A stretch of DNA of 64,000 nucleotides from Rebecca billardiae RCC1528 (taxonomy: Eukaryota; Protista; Haptophyta), in NCBI GenBank assembly GCA_965240325.2, contig OZ251225.1:248001-312000 (forward strand), in the 5' to 3' direction. Under the pieces are notes generated by a model. That model ran no database searches. It was not told where the DNA came from and saw nothing but the letters and a program-made list of their open reading frames with translations. Positions 17,960 to 55,278 of this stretch are shown one piece after another (the stretch's first letter is position 1; each line of letters opens with the position of its first letter). Made by a program: the position numbers and the translations under genes.

Positions 17960-18011
<52 letters not shown>

Positions 18012-27000: not shown

Positions 27001-30000
27001 GGCATCGGCGGCGGGCTCGGCGGTGGCGATGGTGGCACCGATGGCGGTGGTGACGGTGGCGGCGCCGGCGGTGGTGGGCCCGGCGGCGGGCTCGGCGGTG
27101 GCGATGGCGGCGGCATCGGCGGCGGGCTTGGCGGTGGCGATGGTGGCACAGATGGCGGTGGTGACGGTGGCGGCGCCGGCGGTGGCGGGCCCGGCGGCGG
27201 GCTCGGCGGTGGCGACGGCGGCGGTATCGGCGGCGGGCTCGGCGGTGGCGATGGTGGCACCGATGGCGGTGGTGACGGTGGCGGCGCCGGCGGTGGCGGG
27301 CCCGGCGGCGGGCTCGGCGGTGGCGATGGCGGCGGCATCGGCGGCGGGCTCGGTGGTGGCGATGGTGGCACCGATGGCGGTGGTGACGGTGGCGGCGCCG
27401 GCGGTGGCGGGCCCGGCGGCGGGCTCGGCGGTGGCGATGGCGGCGGCATCGGCGGCGGAGTCGGCGGCGGCGATGGTGGCATCGATGGCGATGGTGACGG
27501 TGGCGGCGCCGGCGGTGGTGGGCCCGGCGGCGGGCTCGGCGGTGGCGATGGCGGCGGCATCGGCGGCGGGCTTGGCGGTGGCGATGGTGGCACAGATGGC
27601 GGTGGTGACGGTGGCGGCGCCGGCGGTGGCGGGCCCGGCGGCGGGCTCGGCGGTGGCGACGGCGGCGGTATCGGCGGCGGGCTCGGCGGTGGCGATGGTG
27701 GCACCGATGGCGGTGGTGACGGTGGCGGCGCCGGCGGTGGCGGGCCCGGCGGCGGGCTCGGCGGTGGCGATGGCGGCGGCATCGGCGGCGGGCTCGGTGG
27801 TGGCGATGGTGGCACCGATGGCGGTGGTGACGGTGGCGGCGCCGGCGGTGGCGGGCCCGGCGGCGGGCTCGGCGGTGGCGATGGCGGCGGCATCGGCGGC
27901 GGAGTCGGCGGCGGCGATGGTGGCATCGATGGCGGTGGTGACGGTGGCGGCGCCGGCGGTGGCGGGCCCGGCGCCGGGCTCGGCAGTGGCGATGGCGGCG
28001 GCATCGGCGGCGGAGTCGGCGGCGGCGATGGTGGCACCGATGGCGGTGGTGACGGTGGCGGCGCCGGCGGTGGCGGGCCCGGCGGCGGGCTCGGCGGTGG
28101 CGATGGCGGCGACATCGGCGGCCGGCTCGGTGGTGGCGATGGTGGCATCGATGGCGGTGGTGACGGTGGCGGCGCCGGCGGTGGCGGGCCTGGCGGCGGG
28201 CTCGGCGGTGGCAATGGCGGCGGCACCGGAGGTGGGCTCGGCGGCGGCGATGGTGGCACCGATGGCGGTGGTGACGGTGGCGGCGCCGGCGGTGGCGAAC
28301 TCGGCGGCGGGCTCGGCGGTGGCGATGGCGGCGGTATCGGCGGCGGGCTCGGTGGTGGCGATGGTGGCACCGATGGCGGTGGTGACGGCGGCGGCGCCGG
28401 CGGTGGTGGGCCCGGCGGCGGGCTCGGCGGTGGCGATGGCGGCGGCATCGGCGGCGGGCTCGGCGGTGGCAATGGCGGCGGCATCGGAGGTGGGCTCGGT
28501 GGTGGCGATGGTGGCACCGATGGCGGTGGTGACGGTGGCGGCGCCGGCGGCGGCGGGCCCGGCGGCGGGCTCGGCGGTGGCGATGGCGGCGGCACCGGCG
28601 GCGGGCTCGGTGGTGGCGATGGTGGCACCGATGGCGGTGGTGACGGTGGCGGCGCCGGCGGTGGCGGGCCTGGCGGCGGGCTCGGCGGTGGCGATGGCGG
28701 CGGCACCGGCGGCGGAGAGGGCGGCGGCGATGGTGGCACCGATGGCGGTGGCGACGGTGGCGGCGCCGGCGGTGGCGGGCTCGGCGGCGGGCTCGGCGGT
28801 GGCGATGGCGGCGGCACCGGAGGTGGGCTCGGCGGCGGCGATGGTGGCACCGATGGCGGTGGTGACGGCGGCGGCGCCGGCGGTGGTGGGCCCGGCGGCG
28901 GGCTCGGCGGTGGCGATGGCGGCGGCACCGGCGGCGGGCTCGGTGGTGGCGATGGTGGCACCGATGGCGGTGGTGACGGTGGCGGCGCCGGCGGTGGCGG
29001 GCTCGGCGGCGGGCTCGGCGGTGGGGACGGTGGCGGCACCGGCGGCGGGCTCGGCGGTGGCGATGGTGGCACCGATGGCGGTGGTGACGGTGGCGGCGCC
29101 GGCGGTGGCGGGCTCGGCGGCGGGCTCGGCGGTGGCGATGGCGGCGGCACCGGAGGTGGGCTCGGCGGCGGCGATGGTGGCAACGATGGCGGTGGTGACG
29201 GTGGCGGCGCCGGCGGTGGCGGGCTCGGCGGCGGGCTCGGCGGTGGGGACGGCGGCGGCACCGGCGGCGGAGAGGGCGGCGGCGATGGTGGCACCGATGG
29301 CGGTGGTGACGGTGGCGGCGCCGGCGGTGGCGGGCTCGGCGGCGGGCTCGGCGGTGGGGACGGCGGCGGCACCGGCGGCGGAGAGGGCGGCGGCGATGGT
29401 GGCACCGATGGCGGTGGTGACGGTGGCGGCGCCGGCGGTGGCGGGCTCGGCGGCGGGCTCGGCGGTGGGGACGGTGGCGGCACCGGCGGCGGAGAGGGCG
29501 GCGGCGATGGTGGCACCGATGGCGGTGGCGACGGCGGCGGCGCCGGCGGTGGCGGGCTCGGCGGCGGGCTCGGCGGTGGGGACGGCGGCGGCACCGGCGG
29601 CGGAGAGGGCGGCGGCGATGGTGGCACCGATGGCGGTGGCGACGGTGGCGGCGCCGGCGGTGGCGGGCTTGGCGGCGGGCTCGGCGGTGGCGATGGCGGC
29701 GGCATCGGAGGCGGGCTCGGCGGTGGCGATGGTGGCACCGATGGCGGTGGTGACGGCGGCGGCGCCGGCGGTGGCGGGCTCGGCGGCGGGCTCGGCGGTG
29801 GGGACGGTGGCGGCACCGGCGGCGGAGAGGGCGGCGGCGATGGTGGCACCGATGGCGGTGGCGACGGTGGCGGCGCCGGCGGTGGCGGGCTCGGCGGCGG
29901 GCTCGGCGGTGGGGACGGCGGCGGCACCGGCGGCGGAGAGGGCGGCGGCGATGGTGGCATCGATGGCGGTGGCGACGGTGGCGGCGCCGGCGGTGGCGGG

Positions 30001-32390
30001 CTCGGCGGCGGGCTCGGCGGTGGGGACGGCGGCGGCACCGGCGGCGGAGAGGGCGGCGGCGATGGTGGCACCGATGGCGGTGGCGACGGTGGCGGCGCCG
30101 GCGGTGGCGGGCTCGGCGGCGGGCTCGGCGGTGGGGACGGCGGCGGCACCGGCGGCGGAGAGGGCGGCGGCGATGGTGGCATCGATGGCGGTGGCGACGG
30201 TGGCGGCGCCGGCGGTGGCGGGCTCGGCGGCGGGCTCGGCGGTGGGGACGGCGGCGGCACCGGCGGCGGAGAGGGCGGCGGCGATGGTGGCACCGATGGC
30301 GGTGGCGACGGTGGCGGCGCCGGCGGTGGCGGGCTTGGCGGCGGGCTCGGCGGTGGCGATGGCGGCGGCATCGGAGGCGGGCTCGGCGGTGGCGATGGTG
30401 GCACCGATGGCGGTGGTGACGGCGGCGGCGCCGGCGGTGGCGGGCTCGGCGGCGGGCTCGGCGGTGGGGACGGTGGCGGCACCGGCGGCGGAGAGGGCGG
30501 CGGCGATGGTGGCACCGATGGCGGTGGCGACGGTGGCGGCGCCGGCAGTGGCGGGCTCGGCGGCGGGCTCGGCGGTGGGGACGGCGGCGGCACCGGCGGC
30601 GGAGAGGGCGGCGGCGATGGTGGCATCGATGGCGGTGGTGACGGTGGCGGCGCCGGCGGTGGCGGGCTCGGCGGCGGGCTCGGCGGTGGGGACGGCGGCG
30701 GCACAGGTGGCGGGCTCGGCGGCGGCGATGGTGGCACCGATGGCGGTGGTGACGGCGGCGGCGCCGGCGGTGGCGGGCTCGGCGGCGGGCTCGGCGGTGG
30801 ACCGGGCGGCGGGCTTGGCGGCGGGCTTGGCGGCGGGCCCGGTGGTGGGCTTGGTGGAGGGCTCGGCGGTGGTGGGCTCGGCGGTGGGCTCGGCGGAGGA
30901 CTGGGCGGGCTCAGCGGTAGGCTCGGCGGCGGGCTAGGCGGCGGGCTCGGCGGCGGGCTCGGCGGCGGGGCGGGCGGGCTCGGCGGCGGCTTAATCGCAT
31001 CGTACGTCAACGTCCACAGCTTCCAGTAGTCGTGCGTGCCCGCTGTCTCGTTCCAGCTGTGGCAGCACTGGCACTCCCACGACGGCACGTCAGGCGCAAA
31101 GCGGAAGACATCGCACGCGTCCATCGTCTGCGACGCGGCCAGTGCGCAGCCCGCGAGCGTCGTGGCACCGAGCTCCGAGCCCTTCTCGTCGCACTGCCGC
31201 CCCTCCACGCGCAGCACCGCCGTCCAGGCGCCCGGCGGCGAGGGCGGCGAGTATGGGACATATGCGACGCTCCAGAGGTCCCACCAGTCGTGGGTGGTGG
31301 TGCCAGGCCACGAGTCGCAGCATCGGCAGAACCAATGGGTGGCCTCAGGAGCCCACATGAAGACAGAGCAGCCAGCCGCGCCCGCGGCGGCCGCGCACTC
31401 CTCGAGGCCCTCCAGGCCGAAGTTGGTGCCTGTGACGTCGCAGTTGCCGCCCTCGAGCAGCAGCGTCGCCACGTACTGGCCCGGGGCCGGCGGCGGGCTC
31501 GGCGGCGGGCTTGGCGGCGCAGGGCAGGCCGGAAAGGAGTCTGGCGTGACTGCAGCCACCACCTCGTCGCCACACACGCCCGTGCCCGTCACATCGAAGA
31601 CGGTGAGGTCCGTCATCAGCTGCACCTCGGTCGGGATCGTGCCGTGGATGGCTGCGTTCGAGGAGAAGTCAGCGTCGAGAAGCGCGCTCAGCCGGCCGAG
31701 CTCGGTGGGCAGGGTGCCCGCCAGCTGTGCGCTCTTCGCGTGCAAGTTGTTCCGCATCCGCGTGAGCATTCCGAGCTCGGTGGGCAGCGTGCCGCTCAGC
31801 GGGTTGGCGGAGACGCGCAGGAAGGTGAGCGCAGGCATCCACACGGCGAGCTCGGTCGGGAGGGTGCCTGTCAGAACGTTACCGTTCACCTTGTACTCGC
31901 CCATGTCGGCGAACGCCGCCAGAGCCGGGTCAGCCACGCTCCCGCTGAACAGGTTTCCGTTCAGGGCGGCCCTCGCGAGCGCGGTCATCCCCTCCAGGGG
32001 CCCAGGAAGCGAGCCCACAAATTGGTTGGAGTTGAACACCACGTGCGTCATCGCGGTGAGCAAGGCGAGCTCCGTTGGCAGCGGGCCGGTGAGGGCGCAC
32101 TTGCCCAAGTCAAGCCTCTCGAGTGCCGTCAGCAAGCCGAGCTCGGTCGGCAACTGGCCCGTGAGCAGCGCGTGATCAGTGAGCACAAGCTCGGTGAGCG
32201 ACGTGAGCGTGCCCAGCGACACGGGCAGGGTGCTCGACAGGCTCGCCTCCGGGTTGATCAGCGAGGAGCAGGCTGACGGGGCTGCCAGGCATGTCACGTA
32301 GGTAGGAGCGTCAGCCAGCGGGACGTACGTGGCGAGACTCGCCGGCAAGCACGCTAACAGGAGGAGGTGGACCCCCCGTGGTCGAGCCAT
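15942..32390 (-). CDS. Giant polycystin-1/REJ-like cell-surface receptor: signal peptide, LRR, two Cys-rich modules, Ser-Pro3 stalk, REJ, GPS, TM helices, IQ, EF-hand-like region
   Basis: Single 5482-aa ORF. Signal peptide MARPRGVHLLLLACLPASLA. Plant-type LRRs (LTGxLPTELGxLTxL, ~31560-32260). Cys-rich modules with CxCC (~31000-31480). REJ-like motifs (LDASASANP, VNRPPHGGAL, WTDDDADDLPLSYAF). GPS motif ECRWWD...W...GC...CACDHLTEFAG (~19350-19475). IQ motif AACEIQRYVRGLLARR. Several hydrophobic helices. Confidence 0.85.
22740..24070 (-). repeat. Coding tandem repeat, ~51-bp (17-aa) unit PPPAPPPPSPPPSPPPS
   Basis: Visible in the protein and DNA; more diverged than the adjacent 111-bp array. Confidence 0.8.
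24070..30800 (-). repeat. Coding tandem repeat, 111-bp (37-aa) unit, ~60 copies
   Basis: Unit PPPPAPPPSPPPSVPPSPPPSPPP(V/M/I)PPPSPPPSPPP(S/G). DNA period of 111 confirmed at, for example, 24511 and 24622. Confidence 0.92.
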
Positions 32391-32510
32391 GTGTAGCAGC
32401 GCTGGTTGTGTGCCGCGCGCGGTGGCCTCCCTTGTATTGAGATCATGAACCTGGTAGTCGTCATTTACTCATTTACCGCCGTGGGGGTAAAATACATATA
32501 TATAGTATCT

Positions 32511-32533
32511 GTCATATATATGGTTAGTCGCCT
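32511..32533 (+). repeat. 23-bp direct repeat, copy 1
   Basis: GTCATATATATGGTTAGTCGCCT. Confidence 0.85.
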
Positions 32534-32924
32534 CGCTAGAGAGGCTGCACGCTGGCGAGCCGGAGCAAGGGCAATCGCCGCCATCCTTGCGGCAGGCTGA
32601 CTCGGCCTGAGCCTGAGGGTCCGCGAGACCGAGTTGATCGAGTGATGACGAGCCGCCGCGACGCGGCGACGACGAGTCACGACGTCTGTCTGTCGACGAC
32701 GAGCGTACGTAGTGACGATGATGCTGACTCATCTCATCGATCATGCGCACTAATATCCACTGCTATTCTCTCATCTGCCAACGCGCCGCTCCCACGCATG
32801 AGCTCTGCGACGCCGTCGGCCCTGCCCACCGGCGGCCCGCAGGCGGTGACGCCCCGCCTGGGCTGTGGACAGCTGCCCCATGCTGAGCCAAGTTGCAGCC
32901 GGCCGCAGTGCGTCCCCGTGCACA

Positions 32925-33075
32925 CGCAAACTGGGCGATTCGGCCCAGTTTGCGATGGCACGGCCGCAGTGGGCGCGTGCCATCTGAAACTGAGGCTTTT
33001 CCCCAGTTTACTGACCCGCGAAGCCCCCCACTGTGCCATCGCAAACTGGGCCAAAAGCCCCAGTTTCAGCTGGCA
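32925..33075. repeat. Array of three related palindromes (AAACTGGG-n-CCCAGTTT core)
   Basis: Perfect 12-bp stem at 32925-32954. Perfect 20-bp inverted repeat 32942-32961 / 33033-33052. 23-bp inverted repeat with 2 mismatches 32978-33000 / 33053-33075. Core period ~56-59 bp. Confidence 0.9.
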
Positions 33076-33195
33076 TCCGCCACTGCAGAGCGCCAGACCT
33101 TATTGGTTCATGAGTTCCGGAGCAAGGGTGGTTGGTCCCGGAGCATGTTACCCGCGCACCGGTAAAGTTCGTCTCACCAAAGGACCATCAAATAC

Positions 33196-36100
33196 CTATG
33201 AGGTCTGTACGCGGTGTGACCGGAACGGCACGTTGAGCAGCAGAGTCTGATAGAAGTACCCATCGCCGTGCGTGGTCGGCAGGCGGAAGTCGGTGATGAT
33301 GCCAATCTCCTTCGCGCGCGCGACGACGAAGAGCGAGCCGGGCGTGGGCGGCGTGCGCGAGGTCGGCTCGCGGTACGGCAGGATCTCCTCGTCCGCCGCG
33401 GCGCCCGCCTCGATCGCGAGCGCGTTCTCGCGCTCGAGCTGCTGCCGCGCGCGCGTGGCCGCCTCCGCGCCCAACGGAGGGACGACGCGCTCGGCGGGGG
33501 TGACGTCCTGCCGTCGGCGCGCGTACTCGTCCGCGCGCAGCAGGCAGGGCAACGCGTCGGCGCGCTGCGCGTCGCTGAGCTGCGCGTACGGCTTGACCTG
33601 GTACCGCGCGTGGAACGCCGGGTACGTGAAGCTCTGCAGCACGCGCGGTCGGCGCTGGTAAGCCTCGATCGGCCCATCGCTCCATCGCGTGTCGCCGGCG
33701 TCGACGGCGCCGCCACGTTTGAGGCCGCGCATGCGGCGCTCGGGCAGCGCGGTCGGCAGCCGCATCGCGCCCTCGCCGCGAGCGATCGCCAGCCCGAGCG
33801 TGCGCGTCACCATCTCGGGCGCGGCGACCACGCGGTTGGTGAAGCGCAGCTGCCGGCTGAGCGCCGAGCGTCCGGCGCGCCTGCGCATGCCGCTCGTCTC
33901 GCGCGTCGCGCCCGTGCCCTCCGGCTTGGCGATGTACTTGGCGATGTACTTGAGGAAGACGACGCCGCGCACGGCCTGCACGTTGATTGCCGCGCCCCAT
34001 GCGGCGAGCCAGAGCGGGACGTACGGCGAGATGCGCCGATCCTCCTCGCGCTCGCAGGTGTACACGAAGCGGCCGGTTTGCGCGTTGAGAGAGTTCGGCC
34101 GCAAGCCGGCCGCGCCGACCGTGAGCGGGAACGGGTACGCGCTCTTGCAACGCCGCAGCGTCGCGCCCTTCTTGCCGCGGGTGCACTTGGGCACGCACTC
34201 GTGCGTCTGCCACCTGCGCACGCACTCGCGCCAAGCGTGCTGCGCCGCCGTGCGCGGCTCGCGCGGCAGACAGTGCGTGATGGCGGCGATGCCCGGCGGC
34301 GGCTCGTCATCGGCGCGCGGCCGCGGCGGCGCCCCCTCGGCCTCGCCCATCTCGGCGTCGCCGGCCGCGTCGTCAGCGCCGTCGGCGCGGTCGGCAGTCG
34401 GTTCCTCGACCCACACCGCCATGTGCACGTGCAGCGAGCCGCGCGCCTGGTCCTCGTGGCGCAGAAACGTGTGCGTGATCTTGCCGAGCGGCGAGAGCAC
34501 GCCTCGACTCAGGTAGCGCTTGAGAAACAGGTCGAGCCGGTGGTGGTAGTGCCGCGTCGCCTCGACGTACGCCTTTTCGTGGTGGTGGCCCCAGCAGGCG
34601 TTCGCGAGGTCGCACCAGCCCGACTCGTTCGCGGTGAGCGTCACAAAGTATTGCGGTGTGCGGTACTGCACCGCCATCGCCATCAGCTGGTGGTAGCGCT
34701 CGCGCCAGTAGCGCAAACTCCCCACGACGGCGCTGCCGACGCGCCGCCCAAACGTCTCCTCCGTGGCGATGTGCTGCGCAGCGCCGGGCGCGGCGCCGTC
34801 GAGCGCCTGCGCGCGCTCGCGCACCTCGCCATCGAGCTTCGCCAGCTGCTCGGGCGTCAGCTTCGCCGCCACGTCGCCCTGCGCGAGCGTCACGCCGCCC
34901 GCGTGCATCGCGCGCTTGTTCGTCCGCTGATGCAGATACATGAGCACCTCGGGCGCGCGCGCGAGCTGCACGTTGGGCGACGTGAGGCGAATGCGCTTGT
35001 AGTGGCCGAAGGAGACGTGACGGCGCTTGCGCGCGCCATATCGGTCGCTGCCGAGGCAGCCGGGCGGCGGCGGCGCGTCGTCCGGATCCCCGTCCGAAGC
35101 CTCGTCGTCGGCGCGCCCTCCGGCCGACGCCGCCCAAAGCAGCGCCGCGTCGTCATCGTCGGCCGCGCCCTCGGCGCCGCGCTCGGGCTCGCGCACGTCG
35201 GGCTCGCGCCAACCGCCGAGGCCGTACCGGTACCACGCGGTGAGCACGGCCGTATCCGCTGTGCCGTCGTACGCGCCCGTCGCCGGCTCGCCCACCGCGC
35301 TGAAGGGCGCCGGGCGCGGCGGGCGGCGCTGCGCCTCGGCCGCCGCCGCCTCGGCGCGCGAGACCACCGTGCCGAGCGTCTGGTGGCGAAGCGCGTTGTG
35401 CGCGAGCAGCGCCTGCGGGTCAGGCTCGACGCCCGACTCGAGCACGCCCTCGAACGCGAAGGGTACGCCGTCGCCGCTCGGTCGCGGCGGTGGCGGCGCC
35501 GCCGGGTCGACCGCCTCCGCCTCCGCATCGGCGAGCGTCGCGTCCTCATAGTCGGCGATTGGCAGGCCGCTCGCGGCGAGCTGGTCGCCGAGCGCGCCCT
35601 CGGCCGGCGGGAACGGGTCTCGTAGGTTGCGCAGCAGCTCGCGCTCGAGGCACACGAGCATGTCGCGCACGAGCGGGTGCGTGCGCTTCAGCTCGTCCAG
35701 CGCGGCGCGCAGCCGGCGATCTCGATCGGTGCACGGCATGCCCTCGCGACGAGAGGCCAGGATGACGTCCGACCAGCCCGCAAAGTCAGCGGGCAGCAGC
35801 AACCCGCCGCCGCCCATCGAGTCGTAGCCGTTGCCCATCCTGCCCGCATAGCCTCGAAAGAGCGCGGACTCCATCTTCAGCACGGACAGCGCGAGCCGCT
35901 CCTCGACGGTGAGCGCAGCGAGGGCGGGCGGCAGCGGCACGCCCAGGCCGGTGGGCTTGAGCTCGCCCTCGATCGAGGTGAAGCCGTCGCACAGGTCGAG
36001 GCGCGACGTCGACGTCGTGTGCACCGCAAACGGCTCGGTCGGCAGCTTGGTGGCCTGCGCGCACGGCGTGCACGACCACGCGGTGTGGTACTGCCGCCGC

Positions 36101-39100
36101 GAACGGCGCGTGTCGTAGCTGTTCTGCAGAAGCATGCGCGCCGCGTACGCGCGCTCCTTGCCCTCCGCCTCCTCGTCCGGCGCAAAGTTGAAGAGGTCGG
36201 CGGCGACCATGGTGTGCTCGCGCTCGAGCTCGCGGATGAACGGCTGGTACACGCGGTACGCGCGCAGCGACTCGAGCGAGGTGGCGCCGACGACGGTGAC
36301 GCGCCTGGCCTCCTTCGCGTACATCATCGTGCCGCAGCTGAAGCACACGCGGCACGGCCGATCGTCGTACATCGCGAGCGTCTCCGCGAGCACCCCCCAC
36401 TGCTTCTCGTCGAGGTCGAGCTGCATGCTCCCGCCGAGCTGTTCGCGCTCGGCGGCGAGCGCGCGCACGGTGGAGAGGTGCTCGAGGCCCGACCCCACCG
36501 CCGCGTAGTACGCCGCGTGCGCCGAGCGGCGCCGCACCGCGTAGAGCGACTGGTCGCCGATCGCGTACGTCGTCACGATCACCTCGGGCGCGAGGTTGAA
36601 CAGGTCCGCGTCGGCGGCCGTGCTGTCGGGTGGCAGCTCGCGCATCGTCGTCCGTCCGGCGCCGTCGTGCGAGACGTGGACGAGACGCAGCGGAGGCACC
36701 GCGCTCGCGTTGGCCGCGTCGCCCCCTCCCGCCGCCGCGACCGCCGCCGAGAGCTCCGCCACGATCGCGCCGATGGTAGTGTCCGCCGTCACGTCCGCGA
36801 CCGTGATCGCCTCGCGCGGCGCGGGCGACGCGAGGAACTGATCGGCGTGGACGCACGCCTCGCACGCCGAGCACACCTCGAGCGCGGTCGTGGCGCACGA
36901 CGCGGTCTCGCCGCGTCCGTGCGCGCCACCCGCGCCAGCGCGCCCCAAGCCGCCGCCGTCGCCGCCGACCGTCGGCACGCCGCGGTCGCCCGTCGCAGTG
37001 CGGTCGCTCGCGTCACCGCCGACTCCGCCGCCGCCTGCTGCCGCGCCCAACCCCGCACCGCTGGCGCCGCCGGCCGCCCCTGCGGCGCGGCCCTCCGCGC
37101 CGCAGCTGCGCGGCTCGGAGCCGTCGCTCGAGTCCCCGCCGCCCCCGCCGCCGCCCGCGGCCGCACCCGCGCCGCCGGCCGCCGCCGCGTTGCAGCGCGC
37201 CGCGCCCCCAACGCCCATCGCAGACCCGTCACCCGAGTCATCGTCGCCGTCTCCGCCGCCGCCCGCGGCCGCGCCGGTCGCGCTCGCGCTCACGGCGGGG
37301 CCGACGCGCAAAAGGCACCGGCGCGCGCAGCACGTGCAGTCACCAATCGTGTCGGCCGTGCACGCCGACAGGATGATCTGCTCCTGGACCACGGTGAACG
37401 GAAACTCGTACGGAATGGTCGCGCGCTGCCGGCGACGATCGATGCGCGCGCCTGGCGCGTAGTGCGCGCCCGGCTCGAGCGGCGTCCACACGCCGTGCAG
37501 GAGGCGCGTGCGCGGGCGCGAGTAGTCGACGCGATCGACGGCCTCGGGGGGCTGCGCCGTGTCGAACTCGACGCGCAGCAGCCGCAGCGCCTCCGCCCGG
37601 TGCGCCTCGGGCATCCCGGCCGTGGCCGCGCGCAGCGCGGCAGTCGCGCTCGGCAGCTCGCCCGTCTCGGCCTCACACAGGCGCGCGCGCTCGGCAGGAT
37701 CGGCGCAGCGTCGGACGAGCTCGCGCAGCTCGTCGTCTGCGTCGGCGGGGAAGAGCGTCGCGAGCAGCCGCGGCTCGAGCCTGTCCACGACCTCCCGCAG
37801 CCGCAGCAGCCGCTCCTTGCACGCCCTCGGCGTCTTCCCCTCGAATGCGGGCCACGCGCGCTGCGGTGTCGCGTGCAGCACGTGAGCATACTGCGTCTGC
37901 AGCAGGCCGATGTCCTGCTCGATCGTCCACGACGAGTCGTTCTGCGTGTAGAATCGCAGGACGCGCTCGTCGTGCATGGTGCGCAGCGCGGCGTGCAAGC
38001 GCCCGAACGCGCGCTCGGGCGAGTCCTCCGGCGAGAGCTCGCCCTGCGGCTCGGTGCCCGGCTGCCGCTCCCCCTGCGCGCCGCGCGCCGCCTGCGCGCC
38101 GCGCGCCGCGTGGGCGTCGACGCCCTCACAGCCGGTGGGCAACGAGGCCTCGGCCGTGTCGCCGAGCTGCGCGGCGGCGGGGCTGGTGGGGTCGACGTCC
38201 ATGTCGGTCACGGACGGCTCCACCTCGTGCGCGCGCGGCGCCGCCTCGCCCGCGTCGGTGCCGCACGGCGAGCCGCCCGAGAGCGTGCTGAGCGGCCAGA
38301 CGCAGGCGTGCGCGCGCGGCGCGTGCGCGCGCAAAAGGTCCTGCAGCTGGCGCGCGCACTGCGCGAGCGCGGGCTTCGACGCCTGCCGATGACGTTGCGA
38401 CATGCTCTTGGCGGAGCGGCCGTCGAACTGCATGAAGAGCACGGCGAGCGCGTCGTCCACCGGCAGGCACAGCTCGCTCGCGTGCTCGTCGAGCACGGAG
38501 TGCAGCTGCGCGCGGCCCTCGGCCCCGAGCGCGCGCTGCAGAGCCTTGGGCCACGCGTCGCGTGCGCCCGGCGCGCTCGCCACCGAGTCGGCGGCGCGCG
38601 GCCGCTTGCCGGCGGCGGGGCGGCGAGGAAGCTCGACGCTCTTGGCCTGCAGACGCTCGAGCGCGTCGGCGCATTCGCCGCGCAGCAGGTTGTGCAGCGC
38701 CCAGCGATGCGACCGGCACTGCTGGGGCTTGAGGTCCGCGAGGAGCGCATGGCCGCCCGGCGGCGCGCCGACCACACCCGTCTCCAACACCGCGAGGCTC
38801 TGCTCGAGCGAGAAGAGCTGGGACTGCGAGCGCGAGCTGATGAGCGCGCACACGCGCGCATGCGCCTGGGCGCCGAGGACCTCCAGCAGCAACGTGGCCG
38901 GCGGCGACGATATGGCGCTCCCGTCAGCCGCCGCCTGCGTGGTGGATGGACGCCGCGTCGTCGACTCCGACCGCGTCAGGTGGGGCGCGCAACGGTCAGC
39001 AGCTGCGGCGCCATCGCGCGTGCTCGGGGCACGGTGTGCGTCGGTCTGCGGGGCAGCCGTCGCAGCCGATACGGATGGAGCAGCGCCGCCGCGTGCGCTT

Positions 39101-41301
39101 GAAGCGCGGTGCGCGTCGAGCCGCTGGACGGCGGTGGGTGCGTGCTTCCCCAGCAGCGCGCGCAGGCGGTGACGATGCCTGCGGATCTGGTCTGGCGCGA
39201 CACGGCTCAGCGCGGGATGCTCAGCGGCCGCGCCGTAGCCCAGCCCGGTCTCGAGCACGGCGAGGCTCTGCTCGACCGAGAAGTTCGAGGACTTGACGCG
39301 CGCCACGATGATATCGCGGACGGTTGCCAATCCGTCCACGCCCAGCATCGCTGCCAGCGATGCGCCGCCGCCGCGCGCGCGCGCGTTGAGCCAGTCGCCG
39401 TCCACGTGCGCGCCGGGCCGCGCCACCAAACTTGGCGCCAAGTGCCCGCCCTGCTCGCCAGCTCCGCACGGTGGCGCCGTGTCCGCCTCGCTCGCCGCAC
39501 GATCACGATGCGGTGCGCCAACGTGCGCGCACGGCACCGCGTACAGCGCGTGCGCCGCCACGGGCGCTGGGCGGCCCACGCGCGCGGCGCAGCCTGCCGC
39601 AGAGCAGCAGCCCGAGGCTGCCCGCGAGTGCTGCCCGGCAGAGGTTGACGCGATGCGGTCGTGCGACGGCGGCAGCTGCGGCGGCGGCGTCGAAGCGGGC
39701 TCGGCGCCGGCGATCGCACCCGGCGCGTACGCCATCGGCGTGTAGTAGTAGTCGCCACCGGGCATCAGCATCTCCTCGTCGGCCAGCAGCCGCGCGCGCC
39801 GCCGCTCCATGCAGACGATGCCGAGCGCGCCGCGCACCGCGCCCACGCGCCGCGGCGCACGCCCCAACTCCACGCGCGCGCCAGCGGCGGTGCCGCGGAT
39901 TCGCCACAGCGGGCGTGCGCGCCGTTGGATGGCGCGCGCGGCGCGCTCACGCCGCAGCCGCGCGTGCGCGACGGCAAACGCCACGTCCCGCCAGCCCGAC
40001 TCCGCCTTCGAGGCGCGAGCGACGGCAGAGAGGGCTTGCACCCCAGCCGCAGGTGGTGGTGCGAGCAGCTGCGATGGCGGCGCGCGGCCAAACCAGAGCA
40101 GCCCAGCGCGCGCGGCGATCATCATCGCCGATTCGAGCAGCGCGTCGTCCTCGGGAAGAGTGGGCGCGTTCGAGGCGCAAACGCGCAGCGCCGTGCACGC
40201 GGCGCGCACGCCCGCGCCGTACGCCTTGCGCCGTGCTGCATCGGCTCCTGCGCCGTCAGCACGCTGCATTGCTGCTTGCATGCTGCTGAGCGCGCGGCGC
40301 TGCTCGGCGGTCGCCTTGCACCGAATCGAATCGTGGTCGAGCGCGGCGTGCTGCGGCGCGCGCGACATCTCGGCAGTGTCTCGGGGCACCGCGTCGGATG
40401 TCGCATGACGCCGAGACAGGGTGCTGCGGCGGCTGGCCCGCGCACGCCGCCTGCGCACGCCGCCACCAACGCGTCGCGCCGGATTCTCCTCGAACACGTG
40501 CCAGCCTGCTCCGCTTCGGCACGCACGCACGCGTGCGCGTGCCGCGGCGCGTTGCGCCCGCTCGTCGCGCGCGCGCCGGCGTGCGAGGCACGATTCCGTG
40601 GCCAGCGCCAGATCGCCCGCGCGCCAGTCCACCAGCGCGCGCCGCCGCTTGACGTCGTCATCACAGTGTGCCACGCGCAGCGCACCTTGCACGCGTGCGT
40701 GCACGGCATGCATGTGCGCGGGCACGCAGCGTGCGACGCGCTCCAGCACGGCAATCTGAGTGCCCGTCACGTCGAAGCTGTCCACGCCCGGAAGGTCGAG
40801 CCCGCGCGTCGCGCGCCGGCATCGCTCGACGCGCTGAGGGCGAGGCGGAGCATTCGCCTCGCGCAGTGCTCGTCTGACACACCCATGTTCGTCGCGCATG
40901 TGTACAGGAATGCAGCGCATGACGCGTGTAAGCACGGCCATGTGCGTCGCCGACGCGTCGAGGGGGTCCGCCCCCGGCATGCTCAGCCCGAGCGTCTCGT
41001 GCAGCCCCCGGGGCCGAGGCATCGCGAGGCGCAGGACATCGCCTCGTGCGCGCTTAACATGGAGTCGTTCGTCGACCATCCACTCGGGGATGGAATCATA
41101 GACGCGACGCATCTCGGCGAGGGCAGCCCTGGGAGCAGGTTGAGGCCCTCCCATTGGGACCACCGCCACAGCGCCGGCGGAGGCACCACGTCTCGTGCGT
41201 CGCCGTTCACGGCGGACACACTCACGAACTGCAGTCGAACCGGCTGCAGCTGAGACACTTTTCTCCGGCCGAGTCACGCGCGTGTTTCCTGCGCTCGTCA
41301 T
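33196..41301 (-). CDS. Helitron-family Rep (HUH Y2 endonuclease) polyprotein with Myb/SANT-like repeats, a ubiquitin-like domain and a Zn finger; no PIF1 helicase
   Basis: GSLRYW...MA; motif 1 PQYFVTLTANESGW (~34615-34656); motif 2 EDQARGSLHVH (~34423-34455); motif 3 YIAKYIAK (~33925-33950). Also SPYVPLWL, YQRRP, YFYQTLLLNVPFR, and a Helentron-like CxxC...CxxC followed by LPPALAALTVEERLALS. Start uncertain (ATG at 41301 or 41154). Confidence 0.85.
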   Translation of the reverse strand: MTSAGNTRVTRPEKSVSAAAGSTAVRECVRRERRRTRRGASAGAVAVVPMGGPQPAPRAALAEMRRVYDSIPEWMVDERLHVKRARGDVLRLAMPRPRGLHETLGLSMPGADPLDASATHMAVLTRVMRCIPVHMRDEHGCVRRALREANAPPRPQRVERCRRATRGLDLPGVDSFDVTGTQIAVLERVARCVPAHMHAVHARVQGALRVAHCDDDVKRRRALVDWRAGDLALATESCLARRRARDERAQRAAARARVRACRSGAGWHVFEENPARRVGGGVRRRRARASRRSTLSRRHATSDAVPRDTAEMSRAPQHAALDHDSIRCKATAEQRRALSSMQAAMQRADGAGADAARRKAYGAGVRAACTALRVCASNAPTLPEDDALLESAMMIAARAGLLWFGRAPPSQLLAPPPAAGVQALSAVARASKAESGWRDVAFAVAHARLRRERAARAIQRRARPLWRIRGTAAGARVELGRAPRRVGAVRGALGIVCMERRRARLLADEEMLMPGGDYYYTPMAYAPGAIAGAEPASTPPPQLPPSHDRIASTSAGQHSRAASGCCSAAGCAARVGRPAPVAAHALYAVPCAHVGAPHRDRAASEADTAPPCGAGEQGGHLAPSLVARPGAHVDGDWLNARARGGGASLAAMLGVDGLATVRDIIVARVKSSNFSVEQSLAVLETGLGYGAAAEHPALSRVAPDQIRRHRHRLRALLGKHAPTAVQRLDAHRASSARGGAAPSVSAATAAPQTDAHRAPSTRDGAAAADRCAPHLTRSESTTRRPSTTQAAADGSAISSPPATLLLEVLGAQAHARVCALISSRSQSQLFSLEQSLAVLETGVVGAPPGGHALLADLKPQQCRSHRWALHNLLRGECADALERLQAKSVELPRRPAAGKRPRAADSVASAPGARDAWPKALQRALGAEGRAQLHSVLDEHASELCLPVDDALAVLFMQFDGRSAKSMSQRHRQASKPALAQCARQLQDLLRAHAPRAHACVWPLSTLSGGSPCGTDAGEAAPRAHEVEPSVTDMDVDPTSPAAAQLGDTAEASLPTGCEGVDAHAARGAQAARGAQGERQPGTEPQGELSPEDSPERAFGRLHAALRTMHDERVLRFYTQNDSSWTIEQDIGLLQTQYAHVLHATPQRAWPAFEGKTPRACKERLLRLREVVDRLEPRLLATLFPADADDELRELVRRCADPAERARLCEAETGELPSATAALRAATAGMPEAHRAEALRLLRVEFDTAQPPEAVDRVDYSRPRTRLLHGVWTPLEPGAHYAPGARIDRRRQRATIPYEFPFTVVQEQIILSACTADTIGDCTCCARRCLLRVGPAVSASATGAAAGGGGDGDDDSGDGSAMGVGGAARCNAAAAGGAGAAAGGGGGGGDSSDGSEPRSCGAEGRAAGAAGGASGAGLGAAAGGGGVGGDASDRTATGDRGVPTVGGDGGGLGRAGAGGAHGRGETASCATTALEVCSACEACVHADQFLASPAPREAITVADVTADTTIGAIVAELSAAVAAAGGGDAANASAVPPLRLVHVSHDGAGRTTMRELPPDSTAADADLFNLAPEVIVTTYAIGDQSLYAVRRRSAHAAYYAAVGSGLEHLSTVRALAAEREQLGGSMQLDLDEKQWGVLAETLAMYDDRPCRVCFSCGTMMYAKEARRVTVVGATSLESLRAYRVYQPFIRELEREHTMVAADLFNFAPDEEAEGKERAYAARMLLQNSYDTRRSRRQYHTAWSCTPCAQATKLPTEPFAVHTTSTSRLDLCDGFTSIEGELKPTGLGVPLPPALAALTVEERLALSVLKMESALFRGYAGRMGNGYDSMGGGGLLLPADFAGWSDVILASRREGMPCTDRDRRLRAALDELKRTHPLVRDMLVCLERELLRNLRDPFPPAEGALGDQLAASGLPIADYEDATLADAEAEAVDPAAPPPPRPSGDGVPFAFEGVLESGVEPDPQALLAHNALRHQTLGTVVSRAEAAAAEAQRRPPRPAPFSAVGEPATGAYDGTADTAVLTAWYRYGLGGWREPDVREPERGAEGAADDDDAALLWAASAGGRADDEASDGDPDDAPPPPGCLGSDRYGARKRRHVSFGHYKRIRLTSPNVQLARAPEVLMYLHQRTNKRAMHAGGVTLAQGDVAAKLTPEQLAKLDGEVRERAQALDGAAPGAAQHIATEETFGRRVGSAVVGSLRYWRERYHQLMAMAVQYRTPQYFVTLTANESGWCDLANACWGHHHEKAYVEATRHYHHRLDLFLKRYLSRGVLSPLGKITHTFLRHEDQARGSLHVHMAVWVEEPTADRADGADDAAGDAEMGEAEGAPPRPRADDEPPPGIAAITHCLPREPRTAAQHAWRECVRRWQTHECVPKCTRGKKGATLRRCKSAYPFPLTVGAAGLRPNSLNAQTGRFVYTCEREEDRRISPYVPLWLAAWGAAINVQAVRGVVFLKYIAKYIAKPEGTGATRETSGMRRRAGRSALSRQLRFTNRVVAAPEMVTRTLGLAIARGEGAMRLPTALPERRMRGLKRGGAVDAGDTRWSDGPIEAYQRRPRVLQSFTYPAFHARYQVKPYAQLSDAQRADALPCLLRADEYARRRQDVTPAERVVPPLGAEAATRARQQLERENALAIEAGAAADEEILPYREPTSRTPPTPGSLFVVARAKEIGIITDFRLPTTHGDGYFYQTLLLNVPFRSHRVQTS

Positions 41302-41382
41302 CGCGCGGTTATCGAAACGACTATAAGCCAAGACTATGACCGGACGCCCTACTATATGATGTGAGTACTCGTCATGAGACAC

Positions 41383-41489
41383 GTTTGTATGAAAGTAGGG
41401 GGAATGTTTGTATGAAAGTAGGGGGAATGTTTGTATGAAAGTAGGGGGAATGTTTGTATGAAAGTAGGGGGAATGTTTGTATGAAAGTA
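41383..41489 (+). repeat. 23-bp tandem repeat GTTTGTATGAAAGTAGGGGGAAT x4.6
   Basis: Four perfect copies plus a 15-bp partial, just upstream of the Rep ORF. Confidence 0.97.
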
Positions 41490-41596
41490 ACGGCTCTTCA
41501 CATACGAAGATTGGACGCCTCGCGCGCGAACATTGCCGTATTTGCCAATACGGTAGAGGAGTCGGGGGGGGAGCATCAGGTAAAAGTGTGTTGTGC

Positions 41597-41619
41597 GTCA
41601 TATATATGGTTAGTCGCCT
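41597..41619 (+). repeat. 23-bp direct repeat, copy 2 (followed by a degenerate ggttagccgcct)
   Basis: Identical to 32511-32533. Confidence 0.85.
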
Positions 41620-43457
41620 ATCTATCATACGGTTAGCCGCCTTGTCGCAAGCGCCAAGAATAGACACGGAGCCATTTAAATTCCCCTTTATAACGGGCTC
41701 CGGGTGATCAGACTGGCGGCCGAAGCCTCCAGCCCTACCCTGGCCAGCCCCCAACCAACCACCACCCTCACCCAACCTCAAACCACTGACCGATACACCG
41801 AGTGCCTTGACACCACTCCGCTGTGGACAGCCCGCCTCCAGAGGGGGCGGGGGTATGCCATTGCCGACAGCATACAAGCCCAACACTGTGGGGTGGTCCC
41901 AGGTACCAGCAGTGCACTGCCTTGCAATTCGAGATCATCGAGTTTGAGCCGAGTCGGCAGACTGGGCACCCCCTAGGGCGCCCCAGTGTGGGCAGAGGGC
42001 CAGCCACTAGCCGATCCCTGCGCGGGGGAGGGGACGGAGGGGGCTGTCAGCGAGCCCAGTAGCTGGGCCGGGGTCTGGGCCACTGGTCCTGGCAGTGAGG
42101 CGCCTGTATTTCACTCGTGCTGCTATGGAGGCAGATGGTGTCATGTCAGACATGTGTGCGATATCGGGCATCAAGTCAGGGCGTGGGCCGCTGTAGGACG
42201 CAAGCAGAGTGGTGGCGATGGCTAATACGCCTGGGGAGGTGTCGTTTGCGCGCCTCTTTCTGCTGCTCTTTGCAGGGGGTTGCATACTTCGTTGCGCAGG
42301 CTGAGCCTGCCTGCCAGTTGGTGTTAGGATAGGCACATTTGCCTGGTGGGGTGGGCAGTGTCGTTTGGGCGGGGGGCTGTCTTGCTGAGCTTGACTAGGA
42401 GGAGGCAGCCTGCGCCTGGGGGCTGCCAGTGTCTTGGCAGAGCCAGCAGGTGGCTGTGTGGCCTGCTGTCCAGTGTCTGACTGTGTAATGCCGTTGTGAG
42501 CTCCGTGACCAGTGCGACTGCCCGCAGCAGGGTCTGCCTCAATCTCAGGGCCCCCATGTGTCAACACTCAGCAGAATCTCAGGAATCGTAAGCCCCCTAC
42601 AGGTCGATGAGGGCAGAATGAGACAGAGGGCACTTTGAGACAAAGGCGGCGGCCCAGTGGCGGCCCAGTGGCGCCCACTGGGCGTGGTGCATGGCGCCCG
42701 CCTCGCACGCGCTACAGCGCCCGATGAGGTGGACGCAAGTCTGTCAAGACGCGTCGCATGTGTGCCCAAGGTGCATGCCTGGCACCTCCGCTCGTTTGCC
42801 GGCCGCTCCGCTGCCCATGCCTGGCCTGCACGCACCAAACGTAGCCGCCGAACGTGCCCCGCCACTGTGAGACGGCCGCGAACCGCGATGCACGGTGCCC
42901 TTCAGTGACGTGAGCAAGGTAGTCTACTACTGCAAGGGGACGCCAACCTGACGGCTGGCCATGCAATGGGAGGCAGTAGGGACGTCAGACACGCGCCAAG
43001 AGCCCATGGGAAGCTTGCTCTCCCCAGTTGGTGAGCTCGTCGGGCGTGCGCACGCGGTTTGTCTCAAAGTGCCCTCCCCCCCCCAAAGTGAGACAAACTT
43101 GATGGTGCTCGTGCTCCTCAACGGCATGGAGTTAGCCCACGAGACTCGCAGCTTGAACTCTTCGTCTGATGCCCTCCACGACGACGTGCGCGAAGGGCGT
43201 GAGCGCCATCGTGGTGGAGCGCAAAACACGATCCGGGATTTTGTCTCATTCTGCCCTCACCCACCTGTAGGTCTTTGATGATCATTGATCTCACACGCGC
43301 GCCACCGGTTCCTGAACGAAAGAAACCGTCTCAGCCCGGAGCTCGTGTTCGGCCGTGGCGGCGACGGTGGTAGTGAACATGACGCCGGGGGTGTTGCGGG
43401 ACACGGGGGGACGGAGGCGGGTGTGCAGTCGTCGTGGGGTGGCGGTGGCGCTCCACC

Positions 43458-44494: not shown

Positions 44495-45976
44495 ATGTCG
44501 CAGGTGGAGATCAACGCGGACGCCATGCGCAGCGTGCTGGCCCACCTGCCGCCCTCCGGCATCAACGCGTGCCGCGCGGCGTGCTCGGCGTGGCACAAGC
44601 TCGGGTCTGAGGACTTCCTGTGGCGCGCGCTCGCGCACCGACACTTTTGGGCGAGTGCAGATGACGCGCCTGCGGAGCCCATCGCCCCCGAGCCGGCGCA
44701 GCCCTCTGAAGCTGGCGGCGCGCCGGTCGGCAGTGCGCTCGCGCCCTTCACCGCGCCCTCGTCCGGCACGCGCATCGAGGCGTCGTGGTGGCACGCCTTC
44801 TGGCGGTGGTCACAGCTCGCGCGCATCGCCGACGCCGACGGCGCGATGGATGCAGCGCTCTGGCTGCAGGTGGCGCGTGCGTGGGCGACGATCGAGCGGT
44901 GGCTGGCCGCGCACCTGCCCGAGATCGGCGCCACGCTCCGCCCGCCCGCCTCCGCGAGCGTGCTCCGCGCCACCGCCTCCCGCCCCCTGCGGTACATGCG
45001 GAGCGTGCACGACGGGCAGGACATCCCGCTCGACCGCTGCATCGCCACGCGCGACCAGCAGGGCGTGCGCGCGCACATCGGCGGGCTGTGGCTCGGGCTG
45101 TTCGGCGGGTACTCGGGGTACAGCCACGTCGTGTGCTCGCGCATGCACCCGCACGCGCTCGCCGTCGAGCTCCAGAGCCAGCACCCGCCGGGCATGTTCT
45201 CACGAGAGGAGGGCGCGCCGCCCGCGCCGGACGGGCCGCACGGGCTCGAGCTGCTCGCCACCTCCTTCCGGCAGGACCGCTCGTTCGCCGCGGACGCGGA
45301 GGGCGGCGTGTGGGTCGCGCGGGCGGGCACGTGGGAGCGCGCCGGGCCCTCCCTCGCCGGCTGGTTCGCGCACTACGCCGCCTCCCTCGAGGCGGGCACC
45401 TTCCGCGCCGACCTGCTCAAGCCGGACGAGCACGAGTCGCGCGGCATCTCGCTCTTCCCCGCCGTGGTCGACGGCGCGCGCTGCACGCGCGCGTTGACGA
45501 ACGGGATCGAGGTGCTCGCGTCGTCGCTCTTCATGCCGGAGCACCCGCAGGCGTTCGCGTACTCGATCCGCCTGCGCATGCTCGGCGACGCCGACGCCGA
45601 GGGCGCGGACGCGCACAGCGCGCAGCTGCACAGCCGCCACTGGACGGTCCGCGACGGCGCCGACCCGCCACGCACCGTGCGCGGCCTGGGCGTGATCGGC
45701 AAGTTCCCCGTGCTCCGGCCGGGCTTGCGGTATCGCGACGACGAGCAGGTGGACAGCCACGAGCGGGTGGGCTTCGCGCGCGCCGTGCCACCCGGCCGGG
45801 AGAAGAGCGGCTGGTTCATCTACCAGTCCTTCTCAGGGCCGATGACCTCCGCTGAGGGCGGCACGTTTGGCGGCGAACTCGAGTTTGTGCCGGGCACGGT
45901 CGCTCAGCCGCGCGGAGAGCCGTTCCGCGTGCAAGTGGCGCCGTTCGAGCTGAAGCGCGGCGAGTACGTGTACTGA
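44495..45976 (+). CDS. F-box + SMI1/KNR4 + ApaG protein (SKIP16/FBXO3-like)
   Basis: F-box region (SVLAHLPP...CRAACSAW...EDFLWR); SMI1 region (AWATIERWL...TLRPPAS...HDGQ; GLFGGYSGY); ApaG region (TNGIEVLASSLF, FAYSIRLR, QLHSRHW, GLGVIGKFPVL, FRVQVAPFEL). Confidence 0.92.
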   Translation: MSQVEINADAMRSVLAHLPPSGINACRAACSAWHKLGSEDFLWRALAHRHFWASADDAPAEPIAPEPAQPSEAGGAPVGSALAPFTAPSSGTRIEASWWHAFWRWSQLARIADADGAMDAALWLQVARAWATIERWLAAHLPEIGATLRPPASASVLRATASRPLRYMRSVHDGQDIPLDRCIATRDQQGVRAHIGGLWLGLFGGYSGYSHVVCSRMHPHALAVELQSQHPPGMFSREEGAPPAPDGPHGLELLATSFRQDRSFAADAEGGVWVARAGTWERAGPSLAGWFAHYAASLEAGTFRADLLKPDEHESRGISLFPAVVDGARCTRALTNGIEVLASSLFMPEHPQAFAYSIRLRMLGDADAEGADAHSAQLHSRHWTVRDGADPPRTVRGLGVIGKFPVLRPGLRYRDDEQVDSHERVGFARAVPPGREKSGWFIYQSFSGPMTSAEGGTFGGELEFVPGTVAQPRGEPFRVQVAPFELKRGEYVY

Positions 45977-48386: not shown

Positions 48387-48590
48387 GATCCCGTTGGCGC
48401 CGACGAGAAGCCGATCCGATGAGATGCGCGCAGGCAGCGAGGACGACGCGAATTCTGCCGCCTCACACGCCTGCACTTTCATTTTCGTGTCACGTCCGGA
48501 CGTCATTCAACGATGGCGGCCGTGAATCCGTGAGTCCGGCTTGACTCCGCCCGCCCCGGCCGGAGCGCCGACGGTCTTGTCTGCCACGGC

Positions 48591-55151: not shown

Positions 55152-55278
55152 CGTTGATCCTGCGCTGGTCGAGCTTGGTTCGTGTCGCGTCGGCGCGGTC
55201 TCGACCGCTTTCACGAAGCGCTGGACATCGGTCTGGGCGTCGGCGCGCCGACCGCGACACTTTGGCTGGACGACAAGC

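Follow-up and report, generated by a model that had tools for sequence, protein, structure and literature searches.

The segment between positions 32511 and 41619 of the window (the whole 64-kb stretch of DNA that was analysed) is probably a young and non-autonomous copy of a rolling-circle element of the Helitron-like group, which would have lost the helicase half of its transposase gene and would be flanked by a 23-bp target duplication. A new helicase-free class of mobile element is not supported.

The insert, approximately 9.06 kb in length, is located within an AT-rich island of a divergent promoter region, between a polycystin-like (LRR/REJ/GPS) receptor gene and an F-box/ApaG gene. The host genome is that of a GC-rich alga.

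The transposase open reading frame

The transposase gene occupies positions 33196–41301 of the minus strand (ATG at 41301, TAG at 33196–33198) and encodes a protein of 2,701 residues, in which an N-terminal extension of approximately 2,000 residues is followed by a Helitron Rep. Three motifs, FVTLTAN (residues 2219–2225, positions 34627–34647), RGSLHVH (residues 2287–2293, positions 34423–34443) and YIAKY (residues 2452–2456, positions 33934–33948), all on the minus strand, correspond to motif I, the HUH motif and the Y2 motif, respectively, and make this Rep one of the two-tyrosine HUH type. The Pfam domain Helitron_like_N is matched with an E-value of 2e-19, and in the alignment with Helraiser (7LCC) motif I, the HUH motif and both tyrosines (Y727 and Y731 of Helraiser) are aligned. 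The open reading frame is thus a Rep, and the frame of about 2,700 residues with three Rep motifs described in an earlier sequence-only reading is present as stated. Also confirmed is its stop seven residues past LLLNVPFR (residues 2687–2694, positions 33220–33243, minus strand), these residues being SHRVQTS, followed by TAG. The Rep and post-Rep region, as delimited by Pfam, the 7LCC alignment and the alignments of relatives, covers residues 2100–2695 (positions 33217–35004, minus strand), the latter being the last residue homologous to relatives. Upstream of it, a conserved Cys-rich pre-Rep module (residues 1538–1889, positions 35635–36690, minus strand) is common to the metagenomic relatives, with tblastn matches in L001, L003–L006 and L009–L013 at E-values of 1e-10 to 1e-20. 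A reported joint from 35545 to 37137 was ignored, one of its sides being only 28 nt long.

The length of the frame is far above chance: in 200 shuffles, no open frame exceeded 839 codons. GC3 amounts to 0.83–0.95 from approximately codon 300 onward, and this strong signal along the whole Rep frame, together with its absence from the tail, argues for a young transposase copy. As a point against truncation, a frame that is perfectly open up to the breakpoint also fits a selected Rep-only gene.

The tail, i.e. the 662 nt from the Rep stop to the left 23-mer (positions 32534–33195, minus strand), is non-coding: it displays no codon periodicity and contains no remnant of a linker or helicase. It harbours a cluster of related palindromes (AAACTGGGC...GCCCAGTTT, positions 32916–33075), and the fold z-score of the tail is -5.3. 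Parts of the tail recur elsewhere in the same organism with different flanks, as seen in Logan contigs; in run X1 the region of approximately 32780–32889 reaches a depth of about 11 versus 1–6 over the Rep frame, and one contig diverges at 33067. In the sequencing runs that contain it, the stretch occurs only at a low share and as short Logan contigs, none of which covers 32000–32599; neither an empty site nor further junctions appear among them. On the opposite side, the AT-rich leader contains, between the right 23-mer and the Rep ATG, a perfect tandem array (positions 41383–41489) in which a different 23-bp unit is repeated 4.7 times (100% matches, score 214), as well as a hairpin at 41536–41553 with a 7-bp stem (CCGTATT/AATACGG), which is the sole stable stem in a leader fold that is as a whole no better than those of shuffles.

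Relatives of the Rep protein

All relatives are metagenome proteins, 33–47% identical to the Rep frame. The closest among 1.84 billion representative proteins are 40–47% identical, and the members of the 90%-identity clusters of the ten top matches are metagenome proteins as well. A homologous-protein search from Rep to the C-terminus returned only four matches (31–37% identity), all with helicase domains and none from the same family at above 50% identity, and a single-protein Rep search of metagenome and viral contigs gave pattern matches among which no relative was confirmed. Within the 33 long relatives, PIF1 is present in 29, Exo_endo_phos in one, and DUF6570, which serves as the marker of the HLE2 group in HELIANO (PMC11417382), in four of the more distant ones. 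There is no DUF6570 match in the Rep frame protein or its closest relatives, nor does the frame match Exo_endo_phos, the Helentron endonuclease marker.

Five relatives, representing three protein clusters, have contig sequence beyond Rep (L001, L003–L006, L007, L009 and L010–L012), and all five encode PIF1 after it. Match coordinates and neighbouring genes are nearly identical in L003–L006 and L009, which resemble one family. In the L003–L006 family, four different left flanks end in T and are followed by TGGCTCCCTCTAGCC, and L004 has, in addition, an inverted partner of 17 nt and, 3 nt away from the junction, a hairpin of 8 bp. Judged from these junctions, the ends of this family are of the Helitron2 type, with a 5' TGG after T, a 17-nt asymmetric terminal inverted repeat and a 3' hairpin. 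The Rep protein scores 265 bits against the relatives with such ends versus 25 bits against Helraiser. The copy belongs to an unnamed clade of Helitron-like elements from marine protists, characterized by very long N-terminal extensions and otherwise found so far in metagenomes only.

The 23-bp direct repeats

The left 23-mer (positions 32511–32533, plus strand) is located 662 nt past the Rep stop, and the right one (positions 41597–41619, plus strand) 295 nt ahead of the Rep ATG; the two copies are exact, as the sequence-only reading had reported with distances of approximately 660 and 300 bp. The left copy also places the insert 121 nt upstream of the receptor start codon, so that the promoter of this gene may be altered. 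The 23-mer, which reads GTCA-TATATA-TGG, occurs exactly only at these two places in the window, with no further match at up to three mismatches, and none is expected from 100 shuffles. The exact 23-mer is absent from the metagenome and viral contigs searched, a result of little bearing on its dispersal, since the organism itself is seemingly absent there. A degenerate third copy (positions 41620–41642, plus strand) abuts the right one; its local alignment to the 23-mer is equalled by none of 2000 shuffles, and we read it as pre-existing target DNA. Its position beside the right 23-mer also fits an iteron-like binding site.

The flanks of the left and right 23-mers are unrelated on both sides, and in silico removal of the insert restores a continuous AT-rich array composed of a TA-rich stretch, the 23-mer and the degenerate 23-mer. 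Because the two 23-mers are perfectly identical and sharp-edged, and because this coherent AT-rich array emerges after removal, a recent target duplication is favoured, and the most plausible reading of the 23-mers is a target-site-type duplication within the AT-rich promoter island. A target duplication is not normally made by HUH transposons. Truncated Helitron2 copies are reported to carry variable flanking repeats of 7–19 bp and up to 443 bp, some with extra filler (Bao and Jurka 2013, PMC3627910).

The regions around the 23-mers were also inspected for element ends. Helitron2/HLE2 elements are characterized by short asymmetric terminal inverted repeats, end hairpins and insertion between T and T, Helitron1 elements by 5'-TC and CTRR-3' ends, a 3' subterminal hairpin and insertion between A and T. 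At the 23-mers, no inverted terminal repeats or terminal hairpins of the Helitron2 type were found in either element orientation, nor anything of the Helitron1 form. The two end regions share no inverted partner of at least 8 nt (TA runs aside), and terminal folds near the 23-mers are no better than those of shuffles and yield no stable terminal hairpin. A plus-strand element TGGTTAG...GTCA, with Rep in antisense, was rejected: it has no inverted partner or 3' hairpin, and in the relatives Rep is sense-oriented.

An alternative that we consider unlikely is that the 23-mers and the degenerate third copy are subterminal direct repeats bound by Rep, the true ends lying outside of them and the copy still being helicase-deleted. 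Candidate 5' ends would then be the TGG starts at 41674 or 41657 (minus strand), and the candidate 3' end would follow an AT hairpin near 32490. Consistent with this, the core GGTTAGYCGCCT is found at three places in the window, at the two ends only, with two of the occurrences in tandem at 23-nt spacing on the 5' side, the TGGCTCC at 41674 agrees over its first 7–8 nt with the 5' terminus of the L003–L006 family, and the second, perfect 23-bp array is found in the same leader. However, the two 23-mers match perfectly in their AT-rich half as well, their identity stops abruptly on both sides, and the tandem neighbour has diverged in exactly this AT-rich half, a pattern of recent duplication rather than of a conserved site. 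Moreover, the terminal repeats of the relatives are inverted, not direct, and for neither candidate 5' end (41674, 41657) did a partner turn up.

It is quite unlikely that no duplication accompanied insertion and that the element landed between two pre-existing, identical tandem 23-bp units of a degenerate AT-rich minisatellite or, in a variant of this explanation, that the repeats mark a head-to-tail junction of partial copies. The degenerate unit at 41620–41642 and a TA-rich partial unit to the left of 32511 do attest to local repetition at the site; yet the element would have had to insert precisely in register where two perfect units meet, and the flanks share nothing beyond the 23-mer.

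The missing helicase and the breakpoint

No PIF1 domain (Pfam) and no Walker A pattern are present in the Rep frame, and in no frame of the 64-kb window did tblastn, queried with the linker and PIF1 portions from six relatives, identify a helicase. Between the Rep stop and the start codon (ATG at 32390) of the adjoining LRR/REJ/GPS receptor gene there are only 805 nt, in agreement with the initial remark that there is neither a Walker A nor room for a PIF1 helicase. The possibility that an intron follows PFR and connects it to a helicase exon was considered and rejected, the window containing no helicase-coding sequence.

Alignments of the relatives to the Rep frame, by tblastn as well as at the protein level, all end at residue 2695, right after LLLNVPFRS. 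At the breakpoint (positions 33196–33216, minus strand), six codons (HRVQTS) without counterpart in any relative are followed by the TAG. The relatives continue past this point into a conserved linker of roughly 170 residues leading into PIF1; P0001, P0010 and P0015 are aligned to query residue 795/800 and then run on into the PIF1 Walker A. The Rep frame thus breaks off within a block conserved among relatives, not behind it. Because this block leads to PIF1 in the relatives, the helicase half was probably lost rather than absent by design, and comparison with these 33–47% identical proteins points to a deletion or truncation event. Of the two options put forward in the sequence-only reading, an internally deleted Helentron-type element proves essentially right, as indicated by the PIF1-carrying Helitron-like clade, with a relative having Helitron2-type ends, and further by the break inside the conserved block. 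The other, a Rep-only family borrowing a host helicase, is contradicted by the same relatives, which continue past PFR into PIF1; this is strong but not final evidence, since the relatives are 33–47% identical and not copies of the same family. Circularization via the direct repeats, also proposed there, fares no better, nothing supporting the 23-mers as recombination or circularization sites.

A genuine Rep-only lineage, or a host-domesticated Rep gene, using replication or a host helicase, appears very improbable. The 2,701 open codons with their strong codon bias, the intact catalytic motifs and a stop that coincides with the domain boundary between Rep and linker speak for such a gene, but the break lies inside the conserved block and is followed by six unrelated codons, PIF1 is found in all relatives with enough contig, and a second copy ending in this way is not known; that the stretch occurs in no RNA run weighs only weakly. 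IS91 and Replitrons are thought to rely on replication or a host helicase. We would give an equally slim chance to a related proposal, in which the 23-mers and the tandem third copy would be Rep-binding repeats of a Helitron lineage that has shed its helicase and still moves, or is maintained as a circle, via replication forks or a host helicase; if true, this lineage would be the Helitron-clade counterpart of IS91 and Replitrons. Finally, a helicase encoded elsewhere, by a distant exon or by a gene split through misassembly or rearrangement, is extremely unlikely: algal genes commonly have introns and read cover is too thin for an assembly check, but no PIF1-like coding sequence exists in any frame of the downstream 33 kb or the upstream 22 kb, the host gene begins 805 nt past the Rep stop, and a 157-nt Logan contig matches positions 33277–33433, just inside the end of the Rep frame, at 100%, though no contig spans the breakpoint.

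Since the helicase is missing here and PIF1 is found in relatives, the copy is a defective derivative and not an autonomous member of the Helitron-like elements. In the proposed course of events, the transposase gene, which is intact from its start codon up to and including the Rep nuclease and breaks off at residue 2695, would have lost its helicase half either by internal deletion or by aberrant, incomplete transposition, and the copy would have inserted into the AT-rich island, flanked by the 23-bp target duplication. Without a helicase and recognizable Helitron2 termini, it is most likely immobile, and might at best be mobilized in trans by relatives of full length.

Comparison with known systems

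Read in this way, the segment is an ordinary defective transposon copy whose value lies mainly in annotation, where the long Rep frame should be called neither a host gene nor a new class of element. Aberrant Helitron2 insertions with long, variable duplications are little known and come from Chlamydomonas (PMC3627910). If the 23-bp repeat is a real target duplication, such duplications would extend to a distant alga, and it would bear on how rolling-circle transposition ends or fails.

Among known systems, one of the nearest is Helitron2/HLE2 (PMC3627910; PMC11417382), with which the copy shares the two-tyrosine HUH Rep matching Helitron_like_N and nearest relatives that are Rep-PIF1 fusions, and to which its relatives are linked by the Helitron2-type ends of the nearest full-length one and by DUF6570 or an endonuclease domain in some. 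It differs from them by the lack of a helicase, of a recognizable inverted terminal repeat or hairpin and of DUF6570, and by its N-terminal extension of about 2,000 residues. The apurinic/apyrimidinic endonuclease of autonomous Helentrons is likewise not in the Rep frame. Canonical Helitron1, represented by Helraiser (7LCC), has these three catalytic motifs too, arranged in identical order, but the sequence match is weak (E-value 7e-5) and a helicase is missing here. Replitrons (Craig 2023, PMC10288648), which occur in algae including a few haptophytes, are likewise eukaryotic, HUH-based and helicase-free, and are marked by short direct repeats at or near both ends that are conserved across copies. 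Their Rep, however, has one catalytic tyrosine, often an HUQ motif, and is allied to the Reps of CRESS-DNA viruses, whereas the Rep described here has two tyrosines and HVH and matches Helitron_like_N and Helraiser. The Chlamydomonas elements CRe-1, 2 and 3 (PMC3627910) are, like this copy, truncated and of Helitron2 type, with direct repeats of unusual, variable length (7–19 bp, sometimes far longer, some with extra non-element sequence beside the repeat). Those copies are 5'-truncated, retain intact 3' ends and encode Fanzor rather than Rep, whereas here the loss would concern the 3' half of the transposase gene.

The Rep reading frame

The minus strand carries an uninterrupted frame of 2,701 residues that begins with an ATG at 41301 and closes with a TAG at 33196–33198. 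GC content at the third codon position is 0.72 in the first ~300 codons, below the remainder, and 0.83–0.95 from there to the end of the ORF; when the same letters were shuffled 200 times, no open frame exceeded 839 codons, as against the 2,701 residues observed. This frame is real coding sequence. Pfam recognizes one domain in it, Helitron_like_N (E-value 2e-19, residues 2186–2294), and no helicase. The three Rep motifs FVTLTAN (residues 2219–2225), RGSLHVH (2287–2293) and YIAKY (2452–2456) lie where the sequence-only reading had placed them, and upon alignment they match motif I, the HUH histidines and both catalytic tyrosines of Helraiser (PDB 7LCC). The same reading had the ORF ending seven residues past LLLNVPFR and lacking a Walker A, which is borne out by the motif positions (LLLNVPFR at residues 2687–2694, then seven residues and the stop) and by a pattern search of the entire protein, in which Walker A is absent. 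N-terminal to Rep are roughly 2,000 residues (window 35635–36690 and 36570–41120, minus strand), among them a Cys-rich module (residues 1538–1889) common to metagenomic relatives at 28–33% identity; no Pfam match was found in this extension outside the module.

Probable loss of the helicase

Two explanations had been offered for a Rep without helicase: an internally deleted Helentron, or a Rep-only family relying on a host helicase and circularising via its direct repeats. The last 800 residues of the ORF were used to query 1.84 billion representative proteins. The top matches, from marine metagenomes, are only 40–47% identical, and since no representative exceeds about 50% identity, none is a copy of the same family. 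Among the best matches, the relative proteins P0001, P0010 and P0015 remain aligned as far as residue 795 of the 800 in the query and extend past LLL..P[FW]R through a conserved stretch, (E/D)LPSSFI...TLHEEC...LLGP...EA..R.F.P, and an acidic linker to a PIF1 Walker A; a fourth, P0003, contains the same block on a short contig that stops ahead of any helicase. In the Rep ORF homology persists through PFRS and is followed by HRVQTS and the stop, residue 2695 being the end of every tblastn alignment of the protein to the relatives' contigs. PIF1 follows Rep in all five relatives whose metagenome contigs were fetched (L001, L003–L006, L007, L009 and L010–L012). L003–L006 and L009, whose match coordinates and gene neighbours are almost the same, are probably one family, so that the five relatives amount to about three independent lines. 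A domain census of relatives of at least 1,000 residues found Helitron_like_N in 33 of 33 and PIF1 in 29.

Because the relatives' homology continues past residue 2695 into PIF1, the break falls inside a conserved block, a pattern typical of deletion or truncation and unlike a natural domain end. A tblastn search of the 64-kb window with the linkers and helicases of six relatives as queries found no helicase or linker sequence, the LLL..PFR motif being the only match; there is thus neither a downstream exon nor a remnant. Taken together, these comparisons support an internally deleted or truncated Helitron-like copy and leave the Rep-only family unsupported, the continuation past PFR into PIF1, which speaks against that family on the sequence-only reading's own terms, being seen in relatives, not in sister copies.

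Tail and leader

The tail, 662 nt from the Rep stop to the left 23-mer, has no codon periodicity and is non-coding. Related palindromes, three of them, all based on AAACTGGGC...GCCCAGTTT, cluster at 32916–33075, and the fold z-score of the tail is -5.3. In a public run holding the same organism, short contigs are 100% identical to the ORF and have a depth of 2–6, and ~32780–32889 of the tail reaches a contig depth of ~11 between flanks that differ from those in the window; the higher depth and the different flanks identify at least parts of the tail as dispersed repeats. Another contig of this run tracks 32802–33067 and diverges beyond. If the tail is the 3' region of the element itself, common to non-autonomous relatives, the defect would be an internal deletion; alternatively, the tail may be unrelated filler.

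In the leader, from the right 23-mer to the Rep ATG, the 23-bp unit GTTTGTATGAAAGTAGGGGGAAT is repeated perfectly in tandem, 4.7 times (41383–41489); this array could act as a promoter element or as a set of binding sites. The unit has the same period as the flanking 23-mer and an unrelated sequence.

Flanking repeats and insertion site

The exact 23-mers are confirmed at 32511–32533 and 41597–41619; a search of the window allowing up to three mismatches yielded no further match, and none is expected by chance. The sequences flanking them are unrelated on either side. Neither an inverted partner nor a stable terminal hairpin was found beside either copy in either orientation, so neither copy marks a canonical Helitron2 terminus. 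Abutting the right copy at 41620–41642 is a degenerate copy (16 of 23 positions, ungapped), a TA-rich partial match lies immediately left of the left copy, and a 12-nt core of the 23-mer occurs in the window only in the two exact copies and the degenerate one. When 32534–41619 is excised in silico, the TA-rich stretch, the 23-mer and the degenerate 23-mer join into one unbroken AT-rich array. Since identity is perfect over the AT-rich half, the edges are sharp and the reconstructed empty site is coherent, the 23-mers are best read as a target-site-type duplication. Target duplications are normally not made by HUH transposons. Alternatives are functional subterminal direct repeats, insertion exactly between two pre-existing tandem units, and a junction left by head-to-tail partial copies.

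Window GC content is 58–82%, and both 23-mers lie in AT-rich islands of 40–55%. The copy is 121 nt upstream of the ATG (32390) of a 5,482-residue ORF on the same minus strand (15942–32390), with a signal-peptide-like start, leucine-rich repeats, a low-complexity stalk of great length that lies on an 82% GC repeat, and both REJ and GPS domains, features that identify a polycystin-like receptor. With an F-box/ApaG gene on its other side, on the plus strand (44495–45973, start at 44495), the insert is in a divergent intergenic region. Further on are genes for a polyprenyl synthetase (47229–48506) and a protein with EF-hand, TPR and Cns1/TTC4 Wheel domains (53457–55334), both on the minus strand. 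At 42596–43271, in the intergenic region that holds the insert, two 30-nt inverted repeats separated by 616 nt are 93% complementary, and a perfect 19-nt pair is nested there; they resemble a small TIR element.

We propose that a Rep-PIF1 element of this clade gave rise to a copy that comprises the leader plus the transposase gene as far as residue 2695, either from an already deleted donor or through an incomplete transposition event. Its insertion into an AT-rich promoter island would have duplicated 23 bp and would be recent, because the ORF is intact and the repeat perfect. Without helicase and recognizable termini the copy is most likely inert; its Rep part could be translatable, but the stretch was found in no RNA run.

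Relationship to Helitron2-type elements

A full-length relative (35% identical, tblastn 1e-73) was assembled in several TARA ocean samples. Its four contigs have four unrelated left flanks, each ending in T and followed by TGGCTCCCTCTAGCC, which sets the 5' end of this multi-copy Helitron2-type element, T|TGGCTCCCTCTAGCC, to the base (L003:2864, L004:1-122, L005:79, L006:92). The left flank on L004 is the 3' end of another copy, and at this head-to-tail junction the 5' end has an inverted partner of 17 nt, with an 8-bp hairpin located three bases ahead of the junction. All these contigs break at a tandem repeat ~9 kb past the Rep start. The relative thus shares the asymmetric terminal inverted repeats, hairpins and T at the target described by Bao and Jurka for Helitron2 (PMC3627910) and by HELIANO for HLE2 (PMC11417382). 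DUF6570, proposed by HELIANO as an HLE2 marker (PMC11417382), was found neither in the 2,701-residue protein nor in its closest relatives; among the 33 longer relatives, 4 have it and one has a Helentron endonuclease domain. Because its full-length relative has such ends, we would assign the element to a divergent branch of marine-protist Helitron-like elements whose ends are of the Helitron2 type. Replitron identity is rejected, the Rep of Replitrons having one tyrosine and being allied to CRESS-DNA viruses (PMC10288648), whereas two catalytic tyrosines are present here. For the 23-mers a candidate precedent is provided by Chlamydomonas, where most truncated Helitron2 copies are flanked by repeats of 7–19 bp, sometimes 44–443 bp, and sometimes have extra sequence beside the flanking repeat (Bao and Jurka, PMC3627910).
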